This document shows positions 30,873 to 45,261 of a stretch of 64,000 nt of DNA, one piece after another. Origin of the DNA: Lepidodermella squamata (taxonomy: Eukaryota > Animalia > Gastrotricha); NCBI GenBank assembly GCA_047495785.1, contig JBLDXI010000033.1:2542001-2606000 (forward strand). The letters run 5' to 3'. Under the pieces are notes generated by a model that searched no databases, was not told the DNA's origin, and saw only the letters and a program-made list of their open reading frames with translations. Each line of letters starts with the position of its first letter. Within the stretch, counting starts at the first letter, position 1. A program made the translations under genes and the position numbers.

Positions 30873-33800
30873 TCACGCGATTTGTCCGCCTTGGTAGAGA
30901 AATTCTTCGGGGAATTTGATGTCTGTCAACGGAATGCCGTTCGAAAGAAACGCAATGCGAGGAGAGTCGGCGGCGCCGCCCTCCGAACCGGAGCCGTTGT
31001 CGCCTACACCGGTACTGCCCTCGTCCGTCAGGTCGAGGGGCGGCGGAATTTGGGACGACGACGAACAGCTCTGAAGAAGATCTGTCAGAGTTGCATAAAG
31101 ATCGGGTGGGGGTTGCTGGTTTGCGGCATTTTTCTGACCCGAATGATGCCGGTTCCGCGACGTCAAAGTCGAGTCGCGGTGATTGGGCGCGTGGCGACGC
31201 GAAGACCGAGGCGTGTTTTGCTTAGATCCAGGCTGGCCGTGATCAACCGACTGCCGCAAGATACCACCCTGGTGGTGCTGACCCGGACGGGTAATAACCG
31301 GAGCGGCCAGGTGTCTCATATTCGCACTAGTCGCACTCAATTCAAGAACCTGAGGGCGCAAAATCGAACGAATACTCTCCGCTGATAGATCTTCCATTGC
31401 CGGAAGAGATTCTGAGTCGAAATCGGGCCGATTCGCCGATAAAAACGCCCCAACAGATTCAGAAGTGCCGGTTGTGCTTGCCAGACTCAGTTCAGACGCG
31501 CTCAGGCTGCGACTTCCCTCCAATAAATGCCGATTTCCGGAGGCGAACAACAGCGCTCGAGTCTGAGGGGCGGATAGCATCAAGTCTTGGGGACGGTAGC
31601 CAGCAGCGTCCAATAACGAGGTCAGCTCCTCGCGGTTGAAGTACAGTGATTCCGCTGGAGGGAGGGTGGCCGGGTAAATATCGGATGAATTTGATCGAGA
31701 AAACGCCATTGCTGGCAAAAGGTATGGTGCATTTTTTCGCCTAGATTCGATGACAGCACGAATTGCTGCGCTGAACGAGTCAACAGGTAAGAGACAAGCA
31801 ACGAGGGAAAAGACAGCGGCCACGACGGCGTGTAACGCGCATCGATGTGGCATCGGCAGTAGCGGTCGAGGGGAGGCTGAAGTGGGTGAAGGAGCTGGCG
31901 CGGGTTCGGAACTAGGTTTATCCGACATTTGCCCGTTCGAACCGGCTTGGAAAGTCAGTTTAATTTTCGGCAGTGAGGCAACGCCTGATTCATCGTCATT
32001 TTCCAGCTCATTGCTAGCATAGCCCAGAGAGGCGAGTGATTGAATGGCCAAACACAAAGCGCACACAGTCAGGAGAAAATCCCCCAGAGGTAACTCCAGT
32101 GACAACAAAGCAACTGTAGTGTACAACGCAGCGACATTGTCGACGTGATTCGACTCAAATGTCGCGGACGTGTAGACTGCGTAGAGTAGTAAAGATCCGT
32201 TTTTGGCAGCAAATAGCGAGTCAGCATCTGACGGCTCGCCAACGACAAAACCTGGACTAGTATCTAGCGATTCGACCAGCTCGACAGTTTCCAGTCGCGG
32301 TTGATTGCTGTGGCGATCGATGAGATGATTGAGAATGCGCTGGACAACGTAGCGCACGACGCGGTCTTCGGCCTGAACCAGCCTAACCAGGCCCTCAAGA
32401 ATCGAGGAGCTTAACGCACTACCCAAACTAACAGTTTTGTATTTCTGCGCTATTCTTAGCACAGCCCGAAGTAAAATCCGCTGAACAGCACACATCGCGT
32501 CCGCTGCCATCCTTTCGTCAAGCTGCTGTCGTTGCAAAGCCGAAAGGCGATTCATTGAAGCGGACGATGGCAATGTTGTCAAGCCAGAAACTGGCGCTGG
32601 CGGCAGAGGGAGAACGGCGAAACCGACCAAGAACGAAATAATCTCATTCAATTGATCCTGGTGTTGCTGTTGGCTATTAGCAACTTCTACGATAGTGTTG
32701 ATAATCGCCTCTTGGAAAGCACGCTCCTCATCGACGGTGGCAGGACTTCCCGCCCGATTAGGACCGCGACTGTACTGACGAACAACTGATGTCCTTAAAT
32801 GCTGGACTAAGCAGCTGAAAACTTCGTAAAAAGTCATTCCGAAAAAGTGAGTATCCACGACATTGACAGCATGCCGTAATACGTCGGTGATTCCTGTTAG
32901 AACACGCGGCTGACTAGCCTCATGCGTGTCCAAATGCTTTAATAGAGCACGCAAAATTTCCCAACTGCACTGCATTTGAGCCGAGGTTATGATTGTTCGA
33001 ACAACTTTGGCTGCAAAGTGATTCGGTGCCCAGCAACGGTGATCGTCAAAATAGCTGAGAACAGGTACAAATACTGTGTCAACGTTGGCGCTTGTCAACC
33101 GGCATAGCAGTTCCCGGAAACATGCCTCGGCAACGGCATTTACCATTTCGGGTGGATGATCTGCTGTCAACTGCAGGTCGCCTAGGTTCACGACAAACTG
33201 TGTATCCTGCACAGACATGTTAAACAGATATGACGGGACAATTTTCTCCATGTGCGCTTTCTGCCAAATATTGACTTGAATTCCGTCTGAGTAAGTCTTT
33301 TTGACGACACCTTGAAGGCCACGCATACCGGCGATGCGAACACGGCGTTGTATAGCCTCGTTATCAGCCCGACAAAAGCACATCGAGCTGAATTTGCTGA
33401 TGAAGAAATCGTAAGAAATGTGATAGGTTGGAGCATCTTCCTCGATATTCGTAAACTTCGTGAACTATTTTAAATACATATTTCAATAAATACAGAGAAA
33501 AATAGAACTCAAAATAAATTACCGATATGATGGCTAACACCTGAAGGTCATAATCAGGACATTTTTCAAGTACTAGTTGAATCATATTGAGGAAACTCTC
33601 TACAAACAAATTCAGCGTCTGTGCACGACATGCAACCAATAAATGATCGATAGCCTCCAGGCAAACAACAGCATATCTGAGAAGAATTGTAATAAGAAGA
33701 GCTAAAAATGATTTATGCAAAAACATACCCTCTTTTAGTCCTCAATCGCTCGATGCTGAAGTCCAACCAATTGAATAAATACTCGCCAACAAGCTTGAGC

Positions 33801-33984: not shown

Positions 33985-35792
33985 TATTCCGCAATCTATG
34001 ATGCAAGACATCAAATTATAGATGTTATTACAAATTGCAAAATATCGCATTAAATAATAACAGGTATAACACATCCGTTATTATTTGGGAACTTGCTGCG
34101 AGCAATACTAGTTCACCTATTGATCTACGGTTTAACGAGCTTTGGTGACATCGAGCATCGAGCTTGGAGCTTGCGGAAGCAGTTACTTATTGGGAAGCAG
34201 TTGCCTAATAATGGCACGAATTCGATTTGGCAAGAAATGAGAATGAACAGCAAGAACAACATCGGAATTGAGCAGTTGGGGAATAATTTCACGTTATAAG
34301 AATTTGAAATGAAGAATGGCAAGGGATGAAAACAAAAAATCAATGAAGATTATTTGTCAATAACAATGCTTTTGGGTATTTAGTAGACTGCATTAGGAGG
34401 CACTAGAAGCAGGGATCTGGAGATTTGTTTGTTACCAGGTTTGCCAATGCAATAGAGAACTCGATCTCGGTTAAACTAACGTCTAACTTCCTATTCTTAC
34501 AAACCAGATTTCAACGCAAAACGCAAAGCGTAAAAAACGCGTTTGTCTAAATGAAGCAGCAGCTATCGTTAAGCATTCAACGGACTTCTTTGGCTGCTAA
34601 AAGGTAAAAACGCTAAATAACGAGATCCACCATGTGCTCCTGCAAAATCGGGAAACGGGACCGGTATTTGTGCCGGGTTCGCTGACGACGCCGAAAAAAA
34701 CCAACCGCGGAACAAAAATATTATATATTCCTAAAACCTTTTCGCTGAAAATCAACTCCTATTTATCAATTAATTTTTTATGTTCTGGCAAAATATTGAA
34801 AACAAAATACGTCAATAATGAACGAAAGTTTAGCGGTATTTCGCAAGGAGCGCGTCCTGTTTTTCAGTTGCCGAATCCAGGTGAGTAAGTATCAAACGGG
34901 CTCTCTCCTTATTATGCCGCTTGACTCCGTTGCATTCGCTTATGTTCAAAATCTAATGAAGTTGCTGATCAATAGCTGGTCGTCATAATTATAACCGCAT
35001 CATGCACTGATTAGCAATTGAACTTCCGGCGGCCTGCATAATCGTAGCGTAGCAATTAGTCATGTTTTATTCGACGAGACGTTGTTTTTCTTAATATTTT
35101 CAGTGGCAGTCCACTAACCATTAATCCTTGTGCAACTGAAACTCATTATTATTATTGTCTTTGAACCACGCCCGCTTTTTGTATGTACCATAGGGTTTGG
35201 GGTATTCTAATTCACGGCGCAATGATGGTAATATTTCCGGGGTTATGGTCAGTCGTCAGATATGACTAGGGATTTCTCTAGAGTTACAAGCACTTGTAAC
35301 GAATTTATCCGCGATTTCATCAGGGATGGGGTAATTTCGCCAAAACCTAAAACCCTAAAAACACGACTATAAATGGTTCGATAATTCTGGTAGGTATACT
35401 TATACTATTTCAGCTTGAATTCGTCAGTTCTTTATTTCCTTTCCGAATTTCAGCTAGGAGTGAGGGAAGTTTACATAATTTGAAAAATCTCTTATCCCAT
35501 TATTTCGGAAGTCGGCTCTCATTTTAAATATTGTTATCCCTTCTTACTTTCTGATAATTCCTCCGGTTCCGGTTTCCCTTAACACACCTCATCATTGAAA
35601 ATTAACAATTTCGCCATCACTCAGTAGCAATGAATAACAATTTTCGTGTTTAGAACTATAAAAAGCAATAGTAACTTTGATCACTGTCGAACTCTGCACA
35701 TATAATTTGAACTTCTGAAACACAATTGTCTTATATAATGAACCTGCATTTTTTAATAGATTGTTAATTAATCGGAAAACAGGAAAAACAGT

Positions 35793-36893
35793 ATGGCGAC
35801 TTCTCTGGCCCCATTGCCTCGAAATCGTGTTATAGATCTCGCAAACATGCGATACGTCTCACAGGCTATTTTCATTGCCAATAAGCGAAAAATAGCCGAT
35901 TTTGTCACCTCTAATGGACCCATTCATATTTCTGAAATCGCCAAGCAATTGGATGCTCATGAAACTAATTTGTACCGTCTTATGAGTTTTCTATCTGCCT
36001 ATGGTATTTTTGAAGAACGCGAAGGTCAATATTTTCTTGGCAACGAATACTCTGAGTCCTTGCGGAAGGATTCGCCGAATAATTGCCATCATATATTAAT
36101 GGCGTATGGGGCTGATTCGTGGGCGCGAAGTGTTATTAACATGGAGCTATCTCTTGATAAATGTACAGAGGCTACTCCGTTCGAGCGAGTCAATGGAGAT
36201 GCATTTTATTCTTACTTATCGAAACATGAAGATGAGCAAACCCATTTTGATTTGGGCATCATGGGTCAGAACATTTGGCAATCAACTGTGCCTGATCATT
36301 ACGATTTCAGTATATATCGCGATGTCGTTGATATTGCTGGTGGGTGTGGCGGATTGCTGAAAGCAATAATGATGAAAAATCCTCATATTAAGGCAACGCT
36401 ATTCGAGGCTCCTACAGTTGTCAAGAGCGTCCTCCCTGAATTGCTAAATGAGGAACCTTTTAAGTCCAAGTTCAGCGTTGTCACCGGAAATTTTCTTGAA
36501 AGTGTCAATGTCGCTGCTGATTTATTTACCGTTTGCATGACGCTTCATTGTTTTGAAGATACGCGACTTGCTGTGATAGTCAACAATATTGCAAATGCCA
36601 TGCGAAAGAGGGAAGGTTCAAAGTTGCTAATTCTGGAAGTTGACTACGAAACGGCTTTTGTTCGCAATAGCCCTTCCTACGGAAGACAGGTAAATTCGTT
36701 TTGCATGTGATCAAAGCGCTCGATGCCTATCGTATCATCTCTACAGCTTGATATGATTATGCAACTGGTCATGGGTGGTCGTGAACGCACTTTTGATATT
36801 TGGAAACAATTCTTGACCTCGCAAGGAATCAAAGTGGCTCGGAAGATTTTCATTCCTCCAAATCGTATGGGAATTGAATGCGAGCTTGCTTGA
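35793..36893 (+). CDS. SAM-dependent small-molecule O-methyltransferase (Methyltransf_2 + wHTH dimerisation domain), OMT1
   Basis: N-terminal wHTH ('ISEIAKQL...LYRLMSFL..YGIF'), 'YDFS..VVDIAGGCG', 'GNFLE', 'LHCF.D' and 'GRERT'. One intron 36690-36746; TATA-like CTATAAAA at ~35657. Confidence 0.9.
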
Positions 36894-37050
36894 AGTTGGG
36901 TGACAATTTAAATAACTTTACTCTTCAAAAACTTGATTTTGACAGCATTCCATTTAGCTCATTCGAGTATCAACCCTTTTATTAATCATAGCAGCTACTT
37001 TTTATTTTGATCTCAATGCATCTCTAGATCTATTATCATTATAATCGAAA

Positions 37051-38152
37051 ATGGCAACTCCCTCTCCTGCACCTTTACCTCGGCATCGCGTCACCGATCT
37101 GGTCAATATGCGATACGTTTCACAAGCAATTTTGATAGCAAATAGGAGAAAAATTGCCGATATCGTTACACCTAATACTCCGGTCCACATTTCCGAACTT
37201 GCGCAGCGTCTAAACACACATGAGACTAATTTATACCGACTAATGAGCTTCCTGTCCTCTTACGGAATTTTCGAAGAAAAAGAAGGGCATTACTTCGTGG
37301 GCAACGAAAGCTCAGACTCGATGCGCGAAGATTCTCCGCAAAATTGCCATCATATTTTGCTTGCATATGGTGCAAATTCGTGGACCCAAAGTGTCGTGAA
37401 TATGGAGCTGGCTCTAGACAAAACCACCGAAGCTACTCCATTTGAACGGATCAACGGTGATCCTTTTTACACGTATTTATCTCGCCACGAGGAGGAGCAG
37501 CGTAATTTTGACTTGGGCATAAAAACGCAAACCACCTGGCAAGCCACTTTGCCTGACTACTATGACTTCAGCATGTGCCGATCCATTGTAGACATAGCTG
37601 GAGGTTGCGGCGGCCTGCTGAAAGGCGTCATGATGAAAAACCCTCATATTGAAGCAACTTTATTCGAAGCTCCGTCTGTCATTAAGAATGTGATGCCGGA
37701 GTTGACCAGCGAAGAGCCTTTCAAGTCGAAGTTCCGCGTCGTCACTGGCAACTTTCTGGAAACTGTCGACGTCGTCGCGGATATTTTCACCGTCGCTATG
37801 ACCTTACATTGCTTTGAAGACACCAGACTGGCAGTGATTGTGAAAAATATTGCCACTGCAATGCGTAAAAAGCCAGGATCAAAGTTACTCATAATTGAGG
37901 TCGACTATGAAAAAGTGTTTGTTAAGAACACGCCATCAGGTGCTAGGCTAGTAAGTACAGCGGCAAATCTAATTTCTCATTTTCAATCATTGGATATTTT
38001 CTTAGCTCGACATGAATATGATGCTGATTATGGGCGGCCGCGAACGCGATTATGACACTTGGAAACAGTTTTTGAACGCCCAGGGCGTCAACCTTGTGCG
38101 AAAAATTCCGATCCCGCCAAATTTTGTCGCTATGGAGTGCGAATTGCTGTGA
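37051..38152 (+). CDS. SAM-dependent O-methyltransferase, OMT2 (tandem paralog of OMT1)
   Basis: Colinear with OMT1 over its full length; intron 37951-38005 at the same position. Confidence 0.9.
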
Positions 38153-38317
38153 GACAGCTATAAACACAACCTGTGATTTCCGAATGTGATTTCTATGAAT
38201 CATTTTTTTTGCTTCCGATTTACATACAAGATAATTTTAATCTTGTTAATTTAAGCAAGTATCATAACTGCCAATTCAACAATTGCCTGTTTTCTATTTT
38301 CGTGTAGAGCGTTATAA

Positions 38318-40129
38318 ATGGAGCTTGACGAACTGATATCGGTTCGTAATTTGAACGATATTCTTATCGTTTACAACGGTCGAAATTTGTCAATATGCTC
38401 ATGCCATATCACATCCCACCACTTGATGATCGTGGCGGAAGAAAACATTTCCCCGCGGGAGCTAACATTCCTTCACAAGCAAATCGACAGCATCGAGCAA
38501 ACCAAATCGATTGCCGTTGACAGTCCAGAGTCGGGTATTGTAACCGGACCGGTTGTTATGCTGAAGATGAAAGATTTCGCCGTGGTTGCTGTCGTTTTTC
38601 AACCGGACACATCGCCAGTGGTGATTTCTAGCCTAGTTTCAACACTGTCAAACTTGAGCAACATTGACACACTTTGCTTCTTCTACCCGTTCTACTATTC
38701 ACCTGAAAGTCCTAGTCTCAGTGCGGATGGTTGGGAATCGTTCTCGCTGGAAGCCGAGTTCCGGACCATGTTCAACTCCAGCTTTTTCCGGCTGGCTAAC
38801 TGCAACCGGGACTTCACTGTTTGCGAGACGTACCCGCCAACCGTTGTAGTGCCAAAAAGCGTGGACGACGATGTATTGGTGAAATCAGCCGCCTTCCGCC
38901 GCCATTACCGCTTCCCAGTCGCATCGTATTGCCATAAGAACGGCGCCACCTTGATCCGAAGTGCTGAACCTCTTATTGGACAAAACGCGGTGTTCCGGTG
39001 CCGCGAAGACGAGCAGCTACTGAACGCCTTCTTAAAAGGTGACTCCCGAGGCGTAATCATCGATACTCGACACCAGTCGTTGATTAAACCGAAGCAGAAT
39101 CGTGGGGGAGGCACAGAGCCGGTTGCCAACTATCCACGCTGGCTTCACCAGAACCAGCCCATCGACCGACCTGAATCGATGAAGAAATCATTCGAGCGCC
39201 TTATTGAGCTTTTGATACAGCGGCGCGACTTGCCTGTTGATGGGTTTCTTGACAAACTCTCCAATACAGCTTGGCTGCACGTCGTTCGAGATGTTCTGAA
39301 TTGCGCTTGCGTCGCTGCGCAGTTGATTGATCGCGATTCAAAGTCAGTGCTCGTGCATGGCGCCGACGGCTTGGATACTTCATTGGCTGTCACGTCGTTG
39401 GCTCAAGTCGTCTTGAACTCGGATTGCCGCACGATCCGTGGTTTCGTCGCTCTGGTCGACCGCGAGTGGGTTCAAGCTGGTCACCCGTTTCGCACGCGTT
39501 GTTTCAAAGGACCCTTCGCGGTTGTTCAAAATCGAGAAAGTGCACCGACTTTTCTCGTATTTCTCGACTGCGTTTGGCAAATCAGCCAACAGTTCCCTTG
39601 TTCGTTTGAGTTCAACGACAAGCTTTTAATCACTCTGTTCCGGTAGGTTGAAATTTTACCCAAAACTTATCATCAATAATGATTTGAATTTTACAGTCAC
39701 GCCTATTTCTCGGAGTACGGCACTTTCATGTGCAATAATGTTCACGAGCAAACGGTGGAGAAGGTTCGCTCTCGAACGATTTCCCTCTGGTCCTACCTGT
39801 TACGCCCTGACGTCTTGGAAACTTATTTGAACCCTCTGTATGAACCTAATCGCGGCGAGGCGATTTGGCCAAGTGTGCAGCCGATTGCGCTTGATTTGTG
39901 GCGGTCGCTCTACCTGGCTAATGTCGATAGCCACGTTGTTGCGACTGAAGCCGAGCGACTGCGCCGTTTCACTGAGATTGTGTCTGAGCATAAGGAACTG
40001 CTCTCTGTCGCCACGAGGCTGAAACGCCAGCTTGCGATGTTACAAGTTGAAGTTCAGCAGCAACAACAACAGCAACAACAAATCAGCAGCAAATCAGCTG
40101 ACTCTGGTATTTGCACGACTGAGTCGTGA
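38318..40129 (+). CDS. MTMR9: Myotubularin-related protein 9 (pseudophosphatase), 2 exons
   Basis: 'CETYPP.VVVPKSVDD', 'GGGTEP..NYPRW', 'VLVHGADGLDTS' lacking the catalytic Cys, 'REWVQAGHPF', 'QQFPCSFEFN' and a C-terminal coiled coil. Confidence 0.92.
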
Positions 40130-41674
40130 TCGGTTGGGAGCGGGGAAAAATTTCGTCCGCTTAGTACCTCAAATTCTGCTCCTTTCTCGAGAGCAAAAGA
40201 TCCAGAGATGACATGATAATTTAATTGCTCGTTATTCGTCCAATGGTTGTCTTAAGCCTGTGGAACTTGAAACGTATTCCACTCTAATTCTTGTCGTAGT
40301 ATGCGATTTTTGTCAGTTGCGTCGACATGCAATATTAATATTTGATTCCATATTTTGGGTTTTATGCTTTGAAGTCACCGTAATATTGCAAATTTTTTAT
40401 TCTTTACAGGCATGTTTGTGTAATCGTCGTCTGTGATCAATCAATAAAAAAGTTGAAAATTGTTCGCGTTTTGTCTTGTTGGGTTGGCGTTTGCTCTGAG
40501 CAGAACAAAGCACCTGTGGAGGCGCCTGCCTTCGCACTCTTGAAAACCGCAAACGGACGTTTAGTCACGAAGACGCGAGACAAAAAATTATTATTTAGAA
40601 ACAAAACAATACGAAGAAGCCCAGCTTGTCGAACCTGAAAAATGATAGATGCCATCCCCACGTTGAAGGTGCCCTCAAACAACGCCGTTCTGATGAAAAA
40701 ATATGTGTATATATTATCATGATTGACTCAAACCCTTGTCACCAGCCTTAACAGAAGAACTGTTTCGTGATGTGCAGAAATCCTATGCACGTAAATTTTC
40801 AGACATACTTGACTGGAGGCTAAACGTTAATGGCGGTGCTCAAACGCGTCGTTAGGATGAAAAGCTGAGTTTATGTTTAGGAGCCCATCTCGTCTGCCGG
40901 AGCGTAGTGCATACGTGAGTTGTTTACTTCTGCGCGCTCGCCATTGACGTCACTCCAGACATCGGCGCAAAATTGAGCGTCTCTTAAATGCGAATAAAAT
41001 CCGAGGTGCAGAATCCTATAAATGTAAGAAAACTCCTCAAGCATCCACTGCAGCCTCCAAAGCTTTAGAGATCGCATGTCTTTTCAGCGATTTGAATTAC
41101 CATATCGACGGTTCGAGCGGTTAGGCCTTACCACAGCGAAATCTTCAGCAGGGCCTACTCATCTTATACCGACTTATGGGAGAAAATGAAACTTGAACGA
41201 ATAATTCTTTCGCACCTCTAAACCTCGAATTCGGGGAATAAATGCTTTGCGAGCGAAATGGCTTCTCAGTTCACACTGACGTATTGGGGTTCGATCTTAG
41301 AGTCGCACATTATGACCACACGTTTCGCGCCTACTATCATCGCTGCGTGTCGATCAGATAAAACACATGCAAACAGTTGCTGTTAGCGAATAACTTTTTC
41401 CAAAAAGAGGTGGAATAAAGACTACAACTAAAATAATAATAATTTACTGGCGGGATTATGTTTCCTATTGGATTCCGAACAAGCTAACTACATTCACTTC
41501 CATTCAAATGATTAGACGAAGCCGCGAACTGATCTAATCCAGTCAAGAGATTTCTCAGGAGCTGACGAGGAACGGTTAAAAATTGAAAGTCAATCAATTA
41601 TTTTAATTTTATTTCATTATAATATTATGTTCAACATAAAAAGTAGATGATCCAATACAAAAGAAAAATTAAGT

Positions 41675-42775
41675 TCATTGCTCAATTGCCAGTCGGCACT
41701 CGTATACCGCAAACATAGGAGGCACCACCATGTGTCCCTTAGAAAATTCGAGACCGCACTTTGCGAGAAGCTCTTTCCACATTGTTGGCGACCGTTCTTT
41801 GCCGTTCAGAACAAACATCATGAGCAAATCCATCGATCGAGAAACTGTAGCAGGCTGGTTCGGGGCAAACTCGTCAATGTTAGGCTCAATTATCAGGAGA
41901 CGGCTGCCAGGTTTGCGAGCCATTGTATCGCCAACGTTTTTCAAAATTTTCGCCACATCTTCATCGCTGAAGTTGTGCAGAGTCTCCGCGATGATGAAAA
42001 GATCGGCGTTGCATTCGAAGCTCTCGAACAAGTCCCCAGCCTTAGCTTCAAATCGGTTCTTCAACTTCGGATCCTCCTTCAACTCGGCGAGAACTCCGGG
42101 CAATACAGCTTCACGCTCAATCAACGTTGCCTTTTTGACGCTGGGGTACTTCTCGAGGATTTGCTTCAAAAAGCCTCCTTGCCCTCCAGCCAGCTCAACA
42201 ACGCTTTCATATTGGCCGAAATCGTAGGCAGAAACGACGGCGGATTGAAGCGGCTTGTGGAAGTTGGTCATGGCATTGTCGAAAAGTTTGCCGACATCAG
42301 GGTTATCGCTCATGTATGAGTAGATAGGAGCACCATTAGCTCGATCGAATGATGGCTTGCCTGTTTTGAGGCTGTAGTCCATATCAAGCATCGCCAAATT
42401 CAAGACGCGGCAGTTTTGCCAGCGAATGAAATCGCGCATATTTCCAGGCGCATCGTCGCGCAACACGTCCGAAAGCTCAGTGCCGACGAAATTGCCGTTT
42501 TCCAGTTCCTGGAAGATGCCATGGCTCGCCAAATAGGCTAAAAAGCGACGCAGGTTTTGCTCATTGAAGCCAAGGATCTTCGCCAGTTCGCTGACATGAA
42601 CAGGCTCATTTCGGATATGGTTTGCGATTCCATACTCAGCGGCGATGTATAGGGATTGAGACAGCGTTCTCACTTGAACAATCGAAAAGAGGAAATGTTG
42701 CGGGGTCATTTGCGCACACGTGTCGAGTGCCAGGTAGTTTGACAACTTGTTGAACTTACTGGTTGGTGTTGCCAT
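41675..42775 (-). CDS. SAM-dependent O-methyltransferase, OMT3 (intronless)
   Basis: Complete 366-aa ORF with wHTH, 'FDNAM', 'YDFGQYESVVELAGGQG', 'GDLFE', 'LHNFSDE' and 'GKERS'; TATATAAG upstream (~42866-42873, minus strand). Confidence 0.92.
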   Translation of the reverse strand: MATPTSKFNKLSNYLALDTCAQMTPQHFLFSIVQVRTLSQSLYIAAEYGIANHIRNEPVHVSELAKILGFNEQNLRRFLAYLASHGIFQELENGNFVGTELSDVLRDDAPGNMRDFIRWQNCRVLNLAMLDMDYSLKTGKPSFDRANGAPIYSYMSDNPDVGKLFDNAMTNFHKPLQSAVVSAYDFGQYESVVELAGGQGGFLKQILEKYPSVKKATLIEREAVLPGVLAELKEDPKLKNRFEAKAGDLFESFECNADLFIIAETLHNFSDEDVAKILKNVGDTMARKPGSRLLIIEPNIDEFAPNQPATVSRSMDLLMMFVLNGKERSPTMWKELLAKCGLEFSKGHMVVPPMFAVYECRLAIEQ

Positions 42776-43535
42776 TGCTGCTGATAGACTCAGAAAGTTT
42801 CTGCAGGAGCTTGGTGTTTCAAAGGTAGAATTTTGTCGAATGAAAATCGCTCCACAGGGGCTTGCTTATATAGCCGCGCGACTCTCGCTTGGCCGCTTGT
42901 TAAGGACACGTACGAATCACGGCCGAGGCTGAGTATGAAGCAATTAGAAAAAATGTTCGTCTTTTCCTGTAGAAGAGTATGCGCAACTACAAAAAGCGCG
43001 CCGGCGATGAGCACGTATCTTTCGTAATAACGTTTTGTAAAAAAATATTTCATCATCGGCCACCCTCTGTTTAAACAAGCAATACAGGCGCACACACAGT
43101 AGTTTTTCTGTAGCTTTGGTTTCCGTCCTCCGTCTATAATGCGCCCGCCACCTGAGGTTTTGAATCTTCAAACAAAAGCGCGTTTCATTGTCGCGAGCAA
43201 TAAATGTTTCTCCTGTTTTCTTGAATATACTCCGCCAACGAGCCACGAAAAAATTTGAAACATTCCACAGCCATCACTGGACAGAAAAACGAATCCATAT
43301 TTGTTCCATGCAATATTTATTAAAAAAGGAAACTCGCAGAGAGCAAGAATATATCACCGGAACTTATTCAAATGACAAATGATGTGTTGTGAGGCTTCTT
43401 GTAATGATAACCCGCGATCGGATAGATCTGTTCATTGAACAAATTGAAAACCAAAAATTCAAGTGAAGCTGTGTCATTCTTGTGTTAAAATTGTCCGTTT
43501 AATCAGGTTGAGATGCTTGGCACAGGGAATGCGAT

Positions 43536-45261
43536 TCAGTTGTTGGCAGCGGTGTCTGACTCGTCGGCTCTGATGCGCTTTGAAGTGATGCCGTCTTCAT
43601 CGATGTCGCCGTTGCCACCGTCATTTTCGGTGCTGTTCGACGAAGCAGGGCGTTTGACCGCTTGCGCAGACTCGCCGTTTCCATTGGTAGCACCGGGCGA
43701 ATCAAGGCGATGACGCTTCAGTTGCATCGAGATGAGGGCGGCGACTCGCGATTTCGTGGCTGGCGAGTCGATGTTCTCGGCAGCTGACGCCAGTGACGAA
43801 ACAAGAGCTGAAGCAATGCGAGCAGGCGAGGCAGTCGATTCCGAGGTTGGCTTTCTACGAGCAGTCAAAGTTTTGACTTCTCCAGTGGCCGCAGAGCCAT
43901 CAGTCGTAATTTCCTTGGATGCCTCCTCGCCGTTGGCCTTCGCCTTCTCAGCCAATTCATTCTTGACAACATCGCGCATCGACCGCTCTTCTTCAACTTC
44001 GGCGATCTTCAAAAAACAAAATGAACCAAGTGCAAGGTTAAAGCTTTCAAAATATACCTTGTCCTTAACATCGTTGATCAGCTCGGCGAATTCTTTCGCA
44101 GCAGTCTGTAGATTGTCTTCTTCTTCTTTATCGGTGGTGGTCTTCAGTTTTTCTGAAACCTTATCTGAAAAATTGATTGAATAGTGAGATTTAGCGATTT
44201 TGGGAACTCTCGGAATGACTAACCGTTGAGTTCCGTAAGAATGCTGAGGCATTCTTTCAAGGATTCGAGGGCTTCATCGTAGCGCTGAAATTGGTGAAGA
44301 GCAGCTCCGAGTTCGTACTCACTTCCAGCTACGATGCGGTCAACACGACCGCTGTGCAAACGGCGAATGTGGATAGCCTCGCGCATATCCTTAGCACCAG
44401 CTTCGCAGTTGCCTCCTTCCATGCTAACCTGTTCAGAGACCAAGTACAGTATTGATCAATGTTGTGTTAGGTCTCACCTCGCCTAGCGCCATCAAACAAT
44501 CTGCAGCTGCAAAATCGCCCTCGACCGATTTTTCTTTGAGAAAAATAACTTTCGCAAGGTCTAAGAAGGTCCATGCAAGCTTGAGATAAGAGTCGGCGTC
44601 ATCTTCGTCTTCTTCCTCCTCTTCCTCGCCTAAATCAAGGTAAATTAACAGATAAGTACATCAGGATTCAATTCTTTTGTCCTTACCTTCGCACTCGCCG
44701 TTTTCGCCATCGGCTTTCGTTTTTTCTTCTTTTTCACCTTCAGCTTCGTTAGTTTTTTCTTCGCCTTCTTCACCTTCTTCACCTTTATCGTCCTCCTGGC
44801 CTTCATTGTCTTCACCCTCGCCTTCATCGTCATCCTCATCATCGCCTTCCTCTGGAATATCATCCATCTTATCATCGCTAGTTCCAGCTTCATTCTTCTT
44901 GTCATCTGCTTCGCCGCTCTTCGCTTTGGCACTTTCCGGTTCAACAACGCCCAAATTTTGACGAGCCATCTCCAACAGACACCGACCGTACATGAGATAT
45001 GCCGGAGCACACTCCTTTCCGAGGTCGCCATGCTTGTTAGCCCTAATAATGGAAAATTAATTATGACAACGGAAAATCATGGCAAACTCACAGCAGCTGG
45101 CAAGCATTAGCCAAATACTCAATGGCTGTGGAGTATTCATCCAGAAGCATGTGTCGTTTTCCTAAAGCGAGTAATTCGGAAGGGTCCGTCGAAATATTAT
45201 TATCAGAAGCCGCGACCATGTTTTCAGTTTCGAGTTGTTGTCCAGGCATTCCAGAAACCAT
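43536..45261 (-). CDS. NASP: NASP/N1N2-family histone chaperone (SHNi-TPR with acidic insert)
   Basis: 'LGKRHMLL', 'ECAPAYLMYGRCLLEMAR', long D/E tract, 'LKLAWTFLDLAKVIF', 'LGEVSMEGGN' and a C-terminal basic NLS-like segment. Confidence 0.9.

Follow-up and report, generated by a model that had tools for sequence, protein, structure and literature searches.

Where do three small-molecule methyltransferase genes that stand among ordinary animal genes come from, and do they belong to a system of their own? The question is raised by a stretch of the genome of the gastrotrich Lepidodermella squamata (assembly GCA_047495785.1, contig JBLDXI010000033.1, positions 2,542,001-2,606,000 of the forward strand). 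We refer to this whole stretch of 64,000 nucleotides as the window, and positions are window-relative unless a contig is named. The window is located on a 2.9-Mb contig (C33) of the 121-Mb assembly, and between positions 35793 and 42775 it carries three intact genes, each encoding a Methyltransf_2 and a dimerisation domain, which we call OMT1, OMT2 and OMT3 (OMT, O-methyltransferase). The original prediction, made from the DNA letters, saw in them a cluster of microbial-type O-methyltransferases, as a candidate for a horizontally acquired biosynthetic or detoxification system.

We consider it probable that the genes encode functional small-molecule methyltransferases dependent on S-adenosylmethionine (SAM), and that they go back to a single ancient transfer from a bacterium that was subsequently domesticated in the animal genome.

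Similarity searches

Among the proteins of the PDB, OMT3 matched the bacterial enzymes MmcR and DtpM with E-values of 4.6e-44 and 7.6e-39, respectively, and AlpH, LaPhzM, DnrK and CalO6 were also found. The plant OMTs (isoflavone, caffeate) gave 1e-11 to 1e-21 (IOMT 8e-21), and human ASMT gave 3e-13, over the C-terminal half only and at 21% identity. With exon 1 of OMT1 as the query, bacterial enzymes alone passed 1e-10, and ASMT did not. The Gladyshev-style alien index of OMT3, calculated from the MmcR and ASMT values, is about 71. The proposed microbial rather than ASMT-like character of the proteins is thus borne out, i.e. plant OMTs and human ASMT are much weaker matches than the bacterial natural-product methyltransferases. 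The motifs from which this character had been read (the MAT start, YDF...VVDIAGGxGG, GNFLE/GDLFE and GxER) are all present.

In the sequence databases, with the entries for this genome and for very near genomes masked, the hits that have a name or a genomic context are bacterial. No named animal was seen among the best hits of a word-based search or among the best 150 of 18,007 profile-search hits. The nearest sequence relatives, at about 30-36% identity to OMT3, are OMTs of Legionellaceae, of metagenome-assembled genomes (MAGs) of Alphaproteobacteria/Chromatiales and of a Myxococcales MAG (L016-L065; P0001-P0005, P0168). The relatives of the nearest metagenomic proteins are found in Alphaproteobacteria and Chromatiales MAGs, in about 35 species of Legionella, Fluoribacter and Tatlockia and in a Polyangia MAG, with actinomycetes further out.

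The top profile hit, P0156 of EukProt, was considered as a near relative and rejected: it is a four-domain, protist-like protein with 25-29% identity per domain, and the other long hits are distant as well. We note that some protists (P0156) and the chytrid Nowakowskiella sp. JEL0407 (P0162) carry two to four tandem Methyltransf_2 modules per chain, and their high profile scores are due to this module repetition only.

Phylogenetic analysis

In a FastTree phylogeny of 178 rows, nine paralogues of the L. squamata genome, two genes of a related animal and the metagenomic proteins P0157 and P0224 formed one clade. A second tree was calculated with IQ-TREE under the LG+F+G4 model from 55 rows and 344 columns, omitting 24 redundant or long-branch rows, with SH-aLRT and ultrafast bootstrap (UFBoot, 1000 replicates) as the two support values. 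Here the same animal clade received 100/100, and its grouping with the Legionella-type and the Alphaproteobacteria/Chromatiales-type sequences received 99.4/100. Further out came actinomycete, Polyangia, Acidobacteriota, Bacteroidota-type and myxobacterial sequences; the chytrid two-domain protein and plant COMT lay outside all bacterial branches. Since many bacterial branches lie between Quillaja COMT and the animal clade, the animal proteins do not group with plant COMT/IOMT. In a quick posterior mean site frequency (PMSF) tree under LG+C20 the animal clade had a support of 100 and fell within a 41-row proteobacterial clade with a support of 98.

In other words, in these trees the sequences of the recipient are nested with support (99.4/100) within those of the donor domain, and the further outgroups are bacterial. 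The original prediction had proposed horizontal acquisition, with a phylogeny including ASMT/ASMTL, plant COMT and bacterial and fungal sequences as a check; in our trees with plant COMT, chytrid and bacterial sequences the animal clade does lie inside the bacteria, which makes the acquisition probable. The simplest reading of the trees is most likely one bacterium-to-animal transfer, then duplication.

Gene structures

The three genes were initially read as the open reading frames (ORFs) 35793-36710 and 37051-38055 on the forward strand and 41675-42775 on the reverse strand. All three lie above the Pfam gathering cut-offs, with 69.1, 71.1 and 109.5 bits for PF00891 (Methyltransf_2; cut-off 22.3; E-values 4e-19, 1e-19 and 2e-31) and 39.3, 31.6 and 30.0 bits for PF08100 (Dimerisation; cut-off 25.6). 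The claim of three full-length genes therefore stands as regards their presence and their domains, but one intron was missed in each of OMT1 and OMT2, whose coding sequences extend beyond a single ORF.

Exon 1 of OMT1 (35793-36689, forward strand, 299 codons; PF08100 and PF00891) encodes the dimerisation domain, the SAM-binding Rossmann core and the catalytic His, and ends in phase 0 at a GT donor. A GT...AG intron of 57 nt, read from the sequence, follows in phase 0 (36690-36746); the Pfam match runs on through this region, with one in-frame TGA inside. Exon 2 (36747-36893, 48 codons and the stop) encodes the G-G-R-E-R motif, the C-terminal strands and the end of the domain. The structure of OMT2, on the same strand, is analogous: exon 1 (37051-37950, 300 codons; PF08100 and PF00891 by Pfam) ends at a GT donor at 37951, the GT...AG intron of 55 nt (37951-38005, a sequence reading) has the same position and phase (0) as that of OMT1, and exon 2 (38006-38152) has 48 codons and the stop, as judged from the sequence and from a comparison of exons with the related animal. 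OMT3 (41675-42775, reverse strand; PF00891 and PF08100) has 366 codons and the stop and no intron; its SAM motifs and catalytic His/Glu are kept. The exons of OMT1 and OMT2 were analysed, and used in the searches, separately.

Conservation of the locus in a related animal

Two proteins with 52% identity to exon 1 of OMT1 also came up in the search with this exon; they are encoded on metagenome contigs of about 30 kb that carry the animal genes PDZD8, BRE1, MTMR9 and an SMS-like gene. MTMR9 is our synteny anchor: in the window this native animal gene, which is outside the OMT family, stands between OMT2 and OMT3 (38318-40129, forward strand; PF06602, E 5e-101), and its best named matches are the MTMR9 of annelids, molluscs and nemerteans (43-46% identity only), as expected of a long-branch protostome that has no near relative among the named database entries. 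Between the two animals MTMR9 is 72% identical, and the gene order OMT, OMT, MTMR9, next gene is kept on the related animal's contigs, which come from independent metagenome assemblies. Exon 1 of OMT1 is 52-53% identical to the related animal's OMT genes, exon 2 is 55% identical to its C-terminal exon, and both related-animal OMTs have an intron within a codon or two of the OMT1/OMT2 site. Because both order and intron site are kept, the OMT1/OMT2 pair and its intron are older than the divergence of the two animals, which are only fairly distantly related.

OMT3 has a separate history. It lies in a 3.4-kb segment (40130-43535), in place of which the relative has about 250 bp between the same flanking genes (L014; tblastx/tblastn), i.e. 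OMT3 is absent there between MTMR9 and the next gene. With regard to carriage by a transposon or retro-insertion, no terminal repeats or other signature were found at 40050-43600, and an insertion here and a loss in the relative are thus both possible. By sequence OMT3 is of another subfamily than OMT1 and OMT2, and the trio is not one unit. The tandem pair and the inverted third gene among animal genes (MTMR9, CDC20, ELP3 and others) are as originally described, but the idea of a single cluster is not upheld, the pair being old and syntenic and OMT3 belonging elsewhere in the family.

The gene family

A six-frame Pfam search of the 121 Mb detected nine Methyltransf_2 genes, which answers the copy count that had been suggested, and no other gene of the family; in particular, no ASMT-type gene was detected beyond these nine. 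Three are in the window, three form a cluster 280 kb upstream (C33:2297268-2303747; loci L007, L002 and L006), and one each is found on C3 (65260-65895, L003), C38 (311841-312476, L008) and C54. All nine look intact. Four have no intron; in the other five, introns occupy four positions, the site common to OMT1 and OMT2 being the only shared one. Pairwise identity is 75% for OMT1/OMT2, 82% for the pair C33b_A/C38, 59% for C3/C33b_C, 52% for OMT3/C54 and 32-44% for the remaining pairs.

The base composition of the genes overlaps that of the neighbouring host genes, both in overall GC and at third codon positions (GC3 of 0.39-0.65 as against 0.48-0.63). Linkage to native genes, introns and host-like composition together show that the genes are physically integrated in the animal genome.

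OMT1 and OMT2 differ by a nonsynonymous distance (dN) of 0.15, with the synonymous distance (dS) saturated. As pairwise dS is saturated in most comparisons, their ratio (omega) was computed for few pairs only; it is 0.18-0.23 for C33b_A and C38. These values, together with intact reading frames in two species, show long-term purifying selection at the sequence level.

Fold and catalytic residues

The AlphaFold2 model of OMT3 has a mean predicted local distance difference test score (pLDDT) of 92.3, above 90 in the helical N-terminal domain, and a predicted template modelling score (pTM) of 0.89. In Foldseek it aligns to DtpM, MmcR, LaPhzM and AlpH with template modelling (TM) scores of 0.84-0.88; human ASMT (4A6D) follows at rank 49 with 0.82. 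In the alignment G197, G200, E220 and G247 are invariant in all nine paralogues, G247 being followed by D or N; the loop glycine G198 is replaced by Ser in one paralogue, C38.

The catalytic His of OMT1-3 (L-H-x-F; L-H-N-F in OMT3) is aligned to the His of L-H-D-W in MmcR, and the Glu of G-x-E-R, also kept in all three, to that of G-A-E-R in MmcR. Given the conserved SAM motifs, the catalytic His and Glu and the matching fold of OMT3, we predict that OMT1-3 are active, dimeric, cytosolic SAM-dependent methyltransferases acting on small, probably aromatic acceptors. The N-terminal winged-helix domain would make the dimer and cap the substrate pocket. SAM binding by the Rossmann domain would involve the (D/E)-x-G-G-x-G loop, the acidic residue with which strand 2 ends and the G-D/N motif. 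For methyl transfer, the His, supported by the G-x-E-R Glu, would deprotonate a hydroxyl (possibly a thiol or amine) of a small aromatic metabolite.

The catalytic residues are not kept throughout the family. Five paralogues outside the window, i.e. those on C3 and C38 and the three at C33:2.297-2.303 Mb, have Leu, Cys, Ile or Ser for the His and Val, Phe or Ile for the Glu, with the SAM-binding motifs kept, and C54 has the His with Gln instead of Glu. Selection still constrains the five His/Glu-less genes, with an omega of about 0.2 in one pair, and this suggests that their chemistry has changed or that they have a binding, non-catalytic role.

Partner genes and the bacterial module

The bacterial homologues, in which the motif K-G-V-L-H-D-F is invariant, occur in a three-gene module. 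Beside the OMT it consists of a FAD_binding_4/Cytokin-bind oxidase (cytokinin-dehydrogenase-like) and an aromatic monooxygenase with a FAD_binding_3 domain. Counted by the oxidase, the module occurs at 27 Legionella-type loci (L020-L058; Legionella, Fluoribacter and Tatlockia), and it is also found on an unrelated bacterial contig (P0005-type; L012/L013, a metagenomic bacterium). We found no described function for the Legionella-type module, which is the likely ancestral context of the animal family.

The animal genome contains no counterpart of the Cytokin-bind oxidase, with one weak FAD_binding_4 match. Co-transfer of the bacterial partner genes was considered and rejected, as there is no Cytokin-bind gene and the FAD_binding_3 match is unlinked and multi-exon. 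The exons of this FAD_binding_3 monooxygenase gene, at C15:4867703-4871155 (L077-L079), have 33-48% identity to the module's monooxygenase; the gene is probably a native gene of the kynurenine-monooxygenase type.

No partner biosynthetic gene was found in the flanks of either OMT cluster, where there are only ordinary animal genes; around the C33:2.297-2.303 Mb cluster these encode a Cys-loop channel, UBE4, a RING-CHY protein and a SOCS-box protein. A biosynthetic gene cluster or a linked multi-enzyme pathway is thus not supported, and the postulated "system" has no basis in the gene neighbourhood: neither cluster is linked to a partner enzyme, and the bacterial flavoenzymes were not acquired along with the OMT. 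Stand-alone modification or detoxification enzymes are, in our inference, the more economical reading.

Origin and role of the family

The history that we consider probable would begin with a single bacterial gene passing to an ancestor of the animal. The donor would have been a Gram-negative lineage related to the homologues of Legionellaceae, of the Alphaproteobacteria/Chromatiales MAGs and of the Myxococcales MAG. During domestication the gene would have gained spliceosomal introns, a host-like base composition and a eukaryotic promoter context, and it would have been duplicated repeatedly. OMT1 and OMT2 would represent an old tandem pair beside MTMR9 that is common to the related species, and OMT3 another subfamily within its 3.4-kb segment. 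The enzymes would probably act alone, outside any linked pathway, and a likely role would be the modification or detoxification of phenolic, heteroaromatic or thiol compounds from the diet, from microbes or from the animal itself.

Several points weigh against this history or limit it. The sister grouping of the animal and the Legionella-type sequences is only moderately supported (80.9/91 in IQ-TREE). P0157 and P0224, which fall in the "animal" clade, come from metagenomic contigs of 1.1-1.2 kb without an assigned organism. Absence from other animals is a weaker argument than it looks, because near records were masked. The PDB E-values and the Foldseek rank argue against a place in a metazoan ASMT/ASMTL clade, and it is on these that the exclusion of ASMT is based, as the tree contained no metazoan ASMT/ASMTL. 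Finally, the assignment to the Methyltransf_2 class stands, but the "O" in O-methyltransferase is an assumption and the specificity is uncertain, because the structures nearest to OMT3 in Foldseek include the S-methyltransferase DtpM and the N-methyltransferase RosA.

The two metagenomic proteins are also what lends some substance to a eukaryotic donor. The immediate step could have been from a protist or fungus carrying a bacterial-type gene, or the gene could have spread among several micro-eukaryotes; P0157 and P0224 lie within the animal clade, and multi-domain eukaryotic relatives do exist in an EukProt protist (P0156) and the chytrid Nowakowskiella (P0162). However, proteins of this type have only 22-32% identity per domain and branch far outside, and all resolved neighbours of the animal clade are bacterial. 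We give such an intermediate a small chance.

Vertical inheritance is somewhat less probable still. An ancient eukaryotic Methyltransf_2 gene would have been lost in nearly all other animals, and the bacterial look of the proteins would result from fast evolution or long-branch attraction. OMT3 and ASMT do have a common fold, the paralogues, only 35-50% identical, are old within the lineage, and the masked records limit the view of close relatives. Yet the animal clade is several well-supported nodes deep in the bacteria under LG+F+G4 and the site-heterogeneous model alike, with the plant and chytrid sequences outside, and in the searches ASMT falls short of MmcR by 30 orders of magnitude. Moreover, four intronless members and introns at four sites in the others are the pattern expected after a transfer.

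The nearest sister group also raises the question of direction. Legionella is known for its eukaryote-like genes, and as the Legionella group is placed next to the animal clade, Legionellaceae and other bacteria might have taken the gene from a eukaryote. We hold this to be very improbable, because the bacterial homologues span several phyla, with successive outgroups bacterial as well, and form part of a conserved three-gene module of bacteria. Bacterial contamination or mis-assembly, for which nothing speaks beyond the bacterial affinity of the proteins, can be dismissed with near certainty given the spliceosomal introns, the host-like GC, the flanking animal genes on a 2.9-Mb contig and the same arrangement in independent metagenome assemblies of a second species.

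Returning to the single bacterial transfer, one may go a step further, although we think this extension rather unlikely. A Legionella-like gene, possibly captured from an intracellular associate, would have given rise to the nine-gene family, in which the five His/Glu-less members have taken on a non-methylating job and the window trio methylates microbial or dietary toxins as a defence. Candidates for such a job are a SAM-dependent hydroxylase or decarboxylase chemistry, of which RdmB and TamK are examples, or a regulator that binds SAM or a metabolite. If true, this would be an animal-specific repurposing of the natural-product methyltransferase scaffold.

Other features of the window

TATA-like octamers are found upstream of two of the genes: TATATAAT at 35732-35739 (forward strand), 54 nt 5' of the OMT1 ATG, and TATATAAG at 42865-42872 (reverse strand), about 90 nt 5' of the OMT3 ATG. 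The octamers precede the two genes for which the original prediction named TATA boxes, but they are consensus matches only and give no evidence of regulation. No such octamer was found in the sequence at a sensible distance from OMT2. Only 157 nt (36894-37050) separate the OMT1 stop from the OMT2 start, and the pair might be co-transcribed or commonly regulated.

The rest of the window is ordinary animal DNA, with genes for TMEM214, a PX-domain protein, CDC20, ELP3, an mTERF protein and a pancreatic-type lipase with a PLAT domain, as well as a LAMP-like protein, a gamma-tubulin complex component (GCP), an FKBP and a tyrosine kinase. On either side of the OMTs the nearest animal genes are no more than a few hundred bases away. 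The C-terminal exon of MTMR9 contains a run of about 10 Gln codons (40029-40070), followed by a Ser-rich tail. Just upstream of OMT1, on the reverse strand, is an unbroken ORF of 836 codons (30873-33383) with no Pfam match; it is dissimilar to the 855-residue gene at the matching position on the related animal's contig.

Comparison with known systems

We found no description of this particular Methyltransf_2 family in animals in the literature, nor in the main text of the papers on microscopic invertebrates cited below. Both the enzyme class and horizontal gene transfer into microscopic animals are well known, and no general concept is changed by our observations.

Among characterised proteins, the closest parallels are the bacterial natural-product enzymes MmcR (mitomycin 7-O-methyltransferase, 3GWZ), DtpM (holomycin methyltransferase, 8RDM), LaPhzM (6C5B), AlpH (8H3T), DnrK and CalO6, which have the same winged-helix dimerisation and Rossmann SAM domains. 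Alignments with them, at 26-31% identity, cover nearly the full length, and OMT1-3 retain the SAM loop, the His and the G-x-E-R Glu. Unlike these, the window genes are in an animal, have introns in OMT1 and OMT2 and stand outside a biosynthetic cluster; the bacterial enzymes themselves differ in the acceptor atom (O, S or N). The Legionellaceae-type OMTs are distinguished by K-G-V-L-H-D-F and by their two flavoenzyme neighbours, partners that the animal does not have. Animal ASMT/HIOMT (4A6D) and ASMTL are of the same Pfam family and fold but are much more distant in sequence. Plant COMT/IOMT share the family, the dimerisation domain and the His/Glu catalytic logic, and are an outgroup in both trees.

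As regards the mode of origin, the comparison is with the horizontally acquired gene sets of bdelloid rotifers and other microscopic invertebrates, which include bacterial-type metabolic genes (PMC3499245, PMC4632278, PMC11258130; compendium PMC13342648). As in these cases, the OMT family has gained introns, is linked to native genes and expanded later; it is unlike them in that the transfer is dated before the split from a second species. It would thus add a well-documented case in which a secondary-metabolite tailoring enzyme passed from a bacterium to an animal, where its gene gained introns, expanded nine-fold and apparently diverged in function, and it provides concrete candidates for the modification or detoxification of small aromatic or thiol compounds in a microscopic animal.

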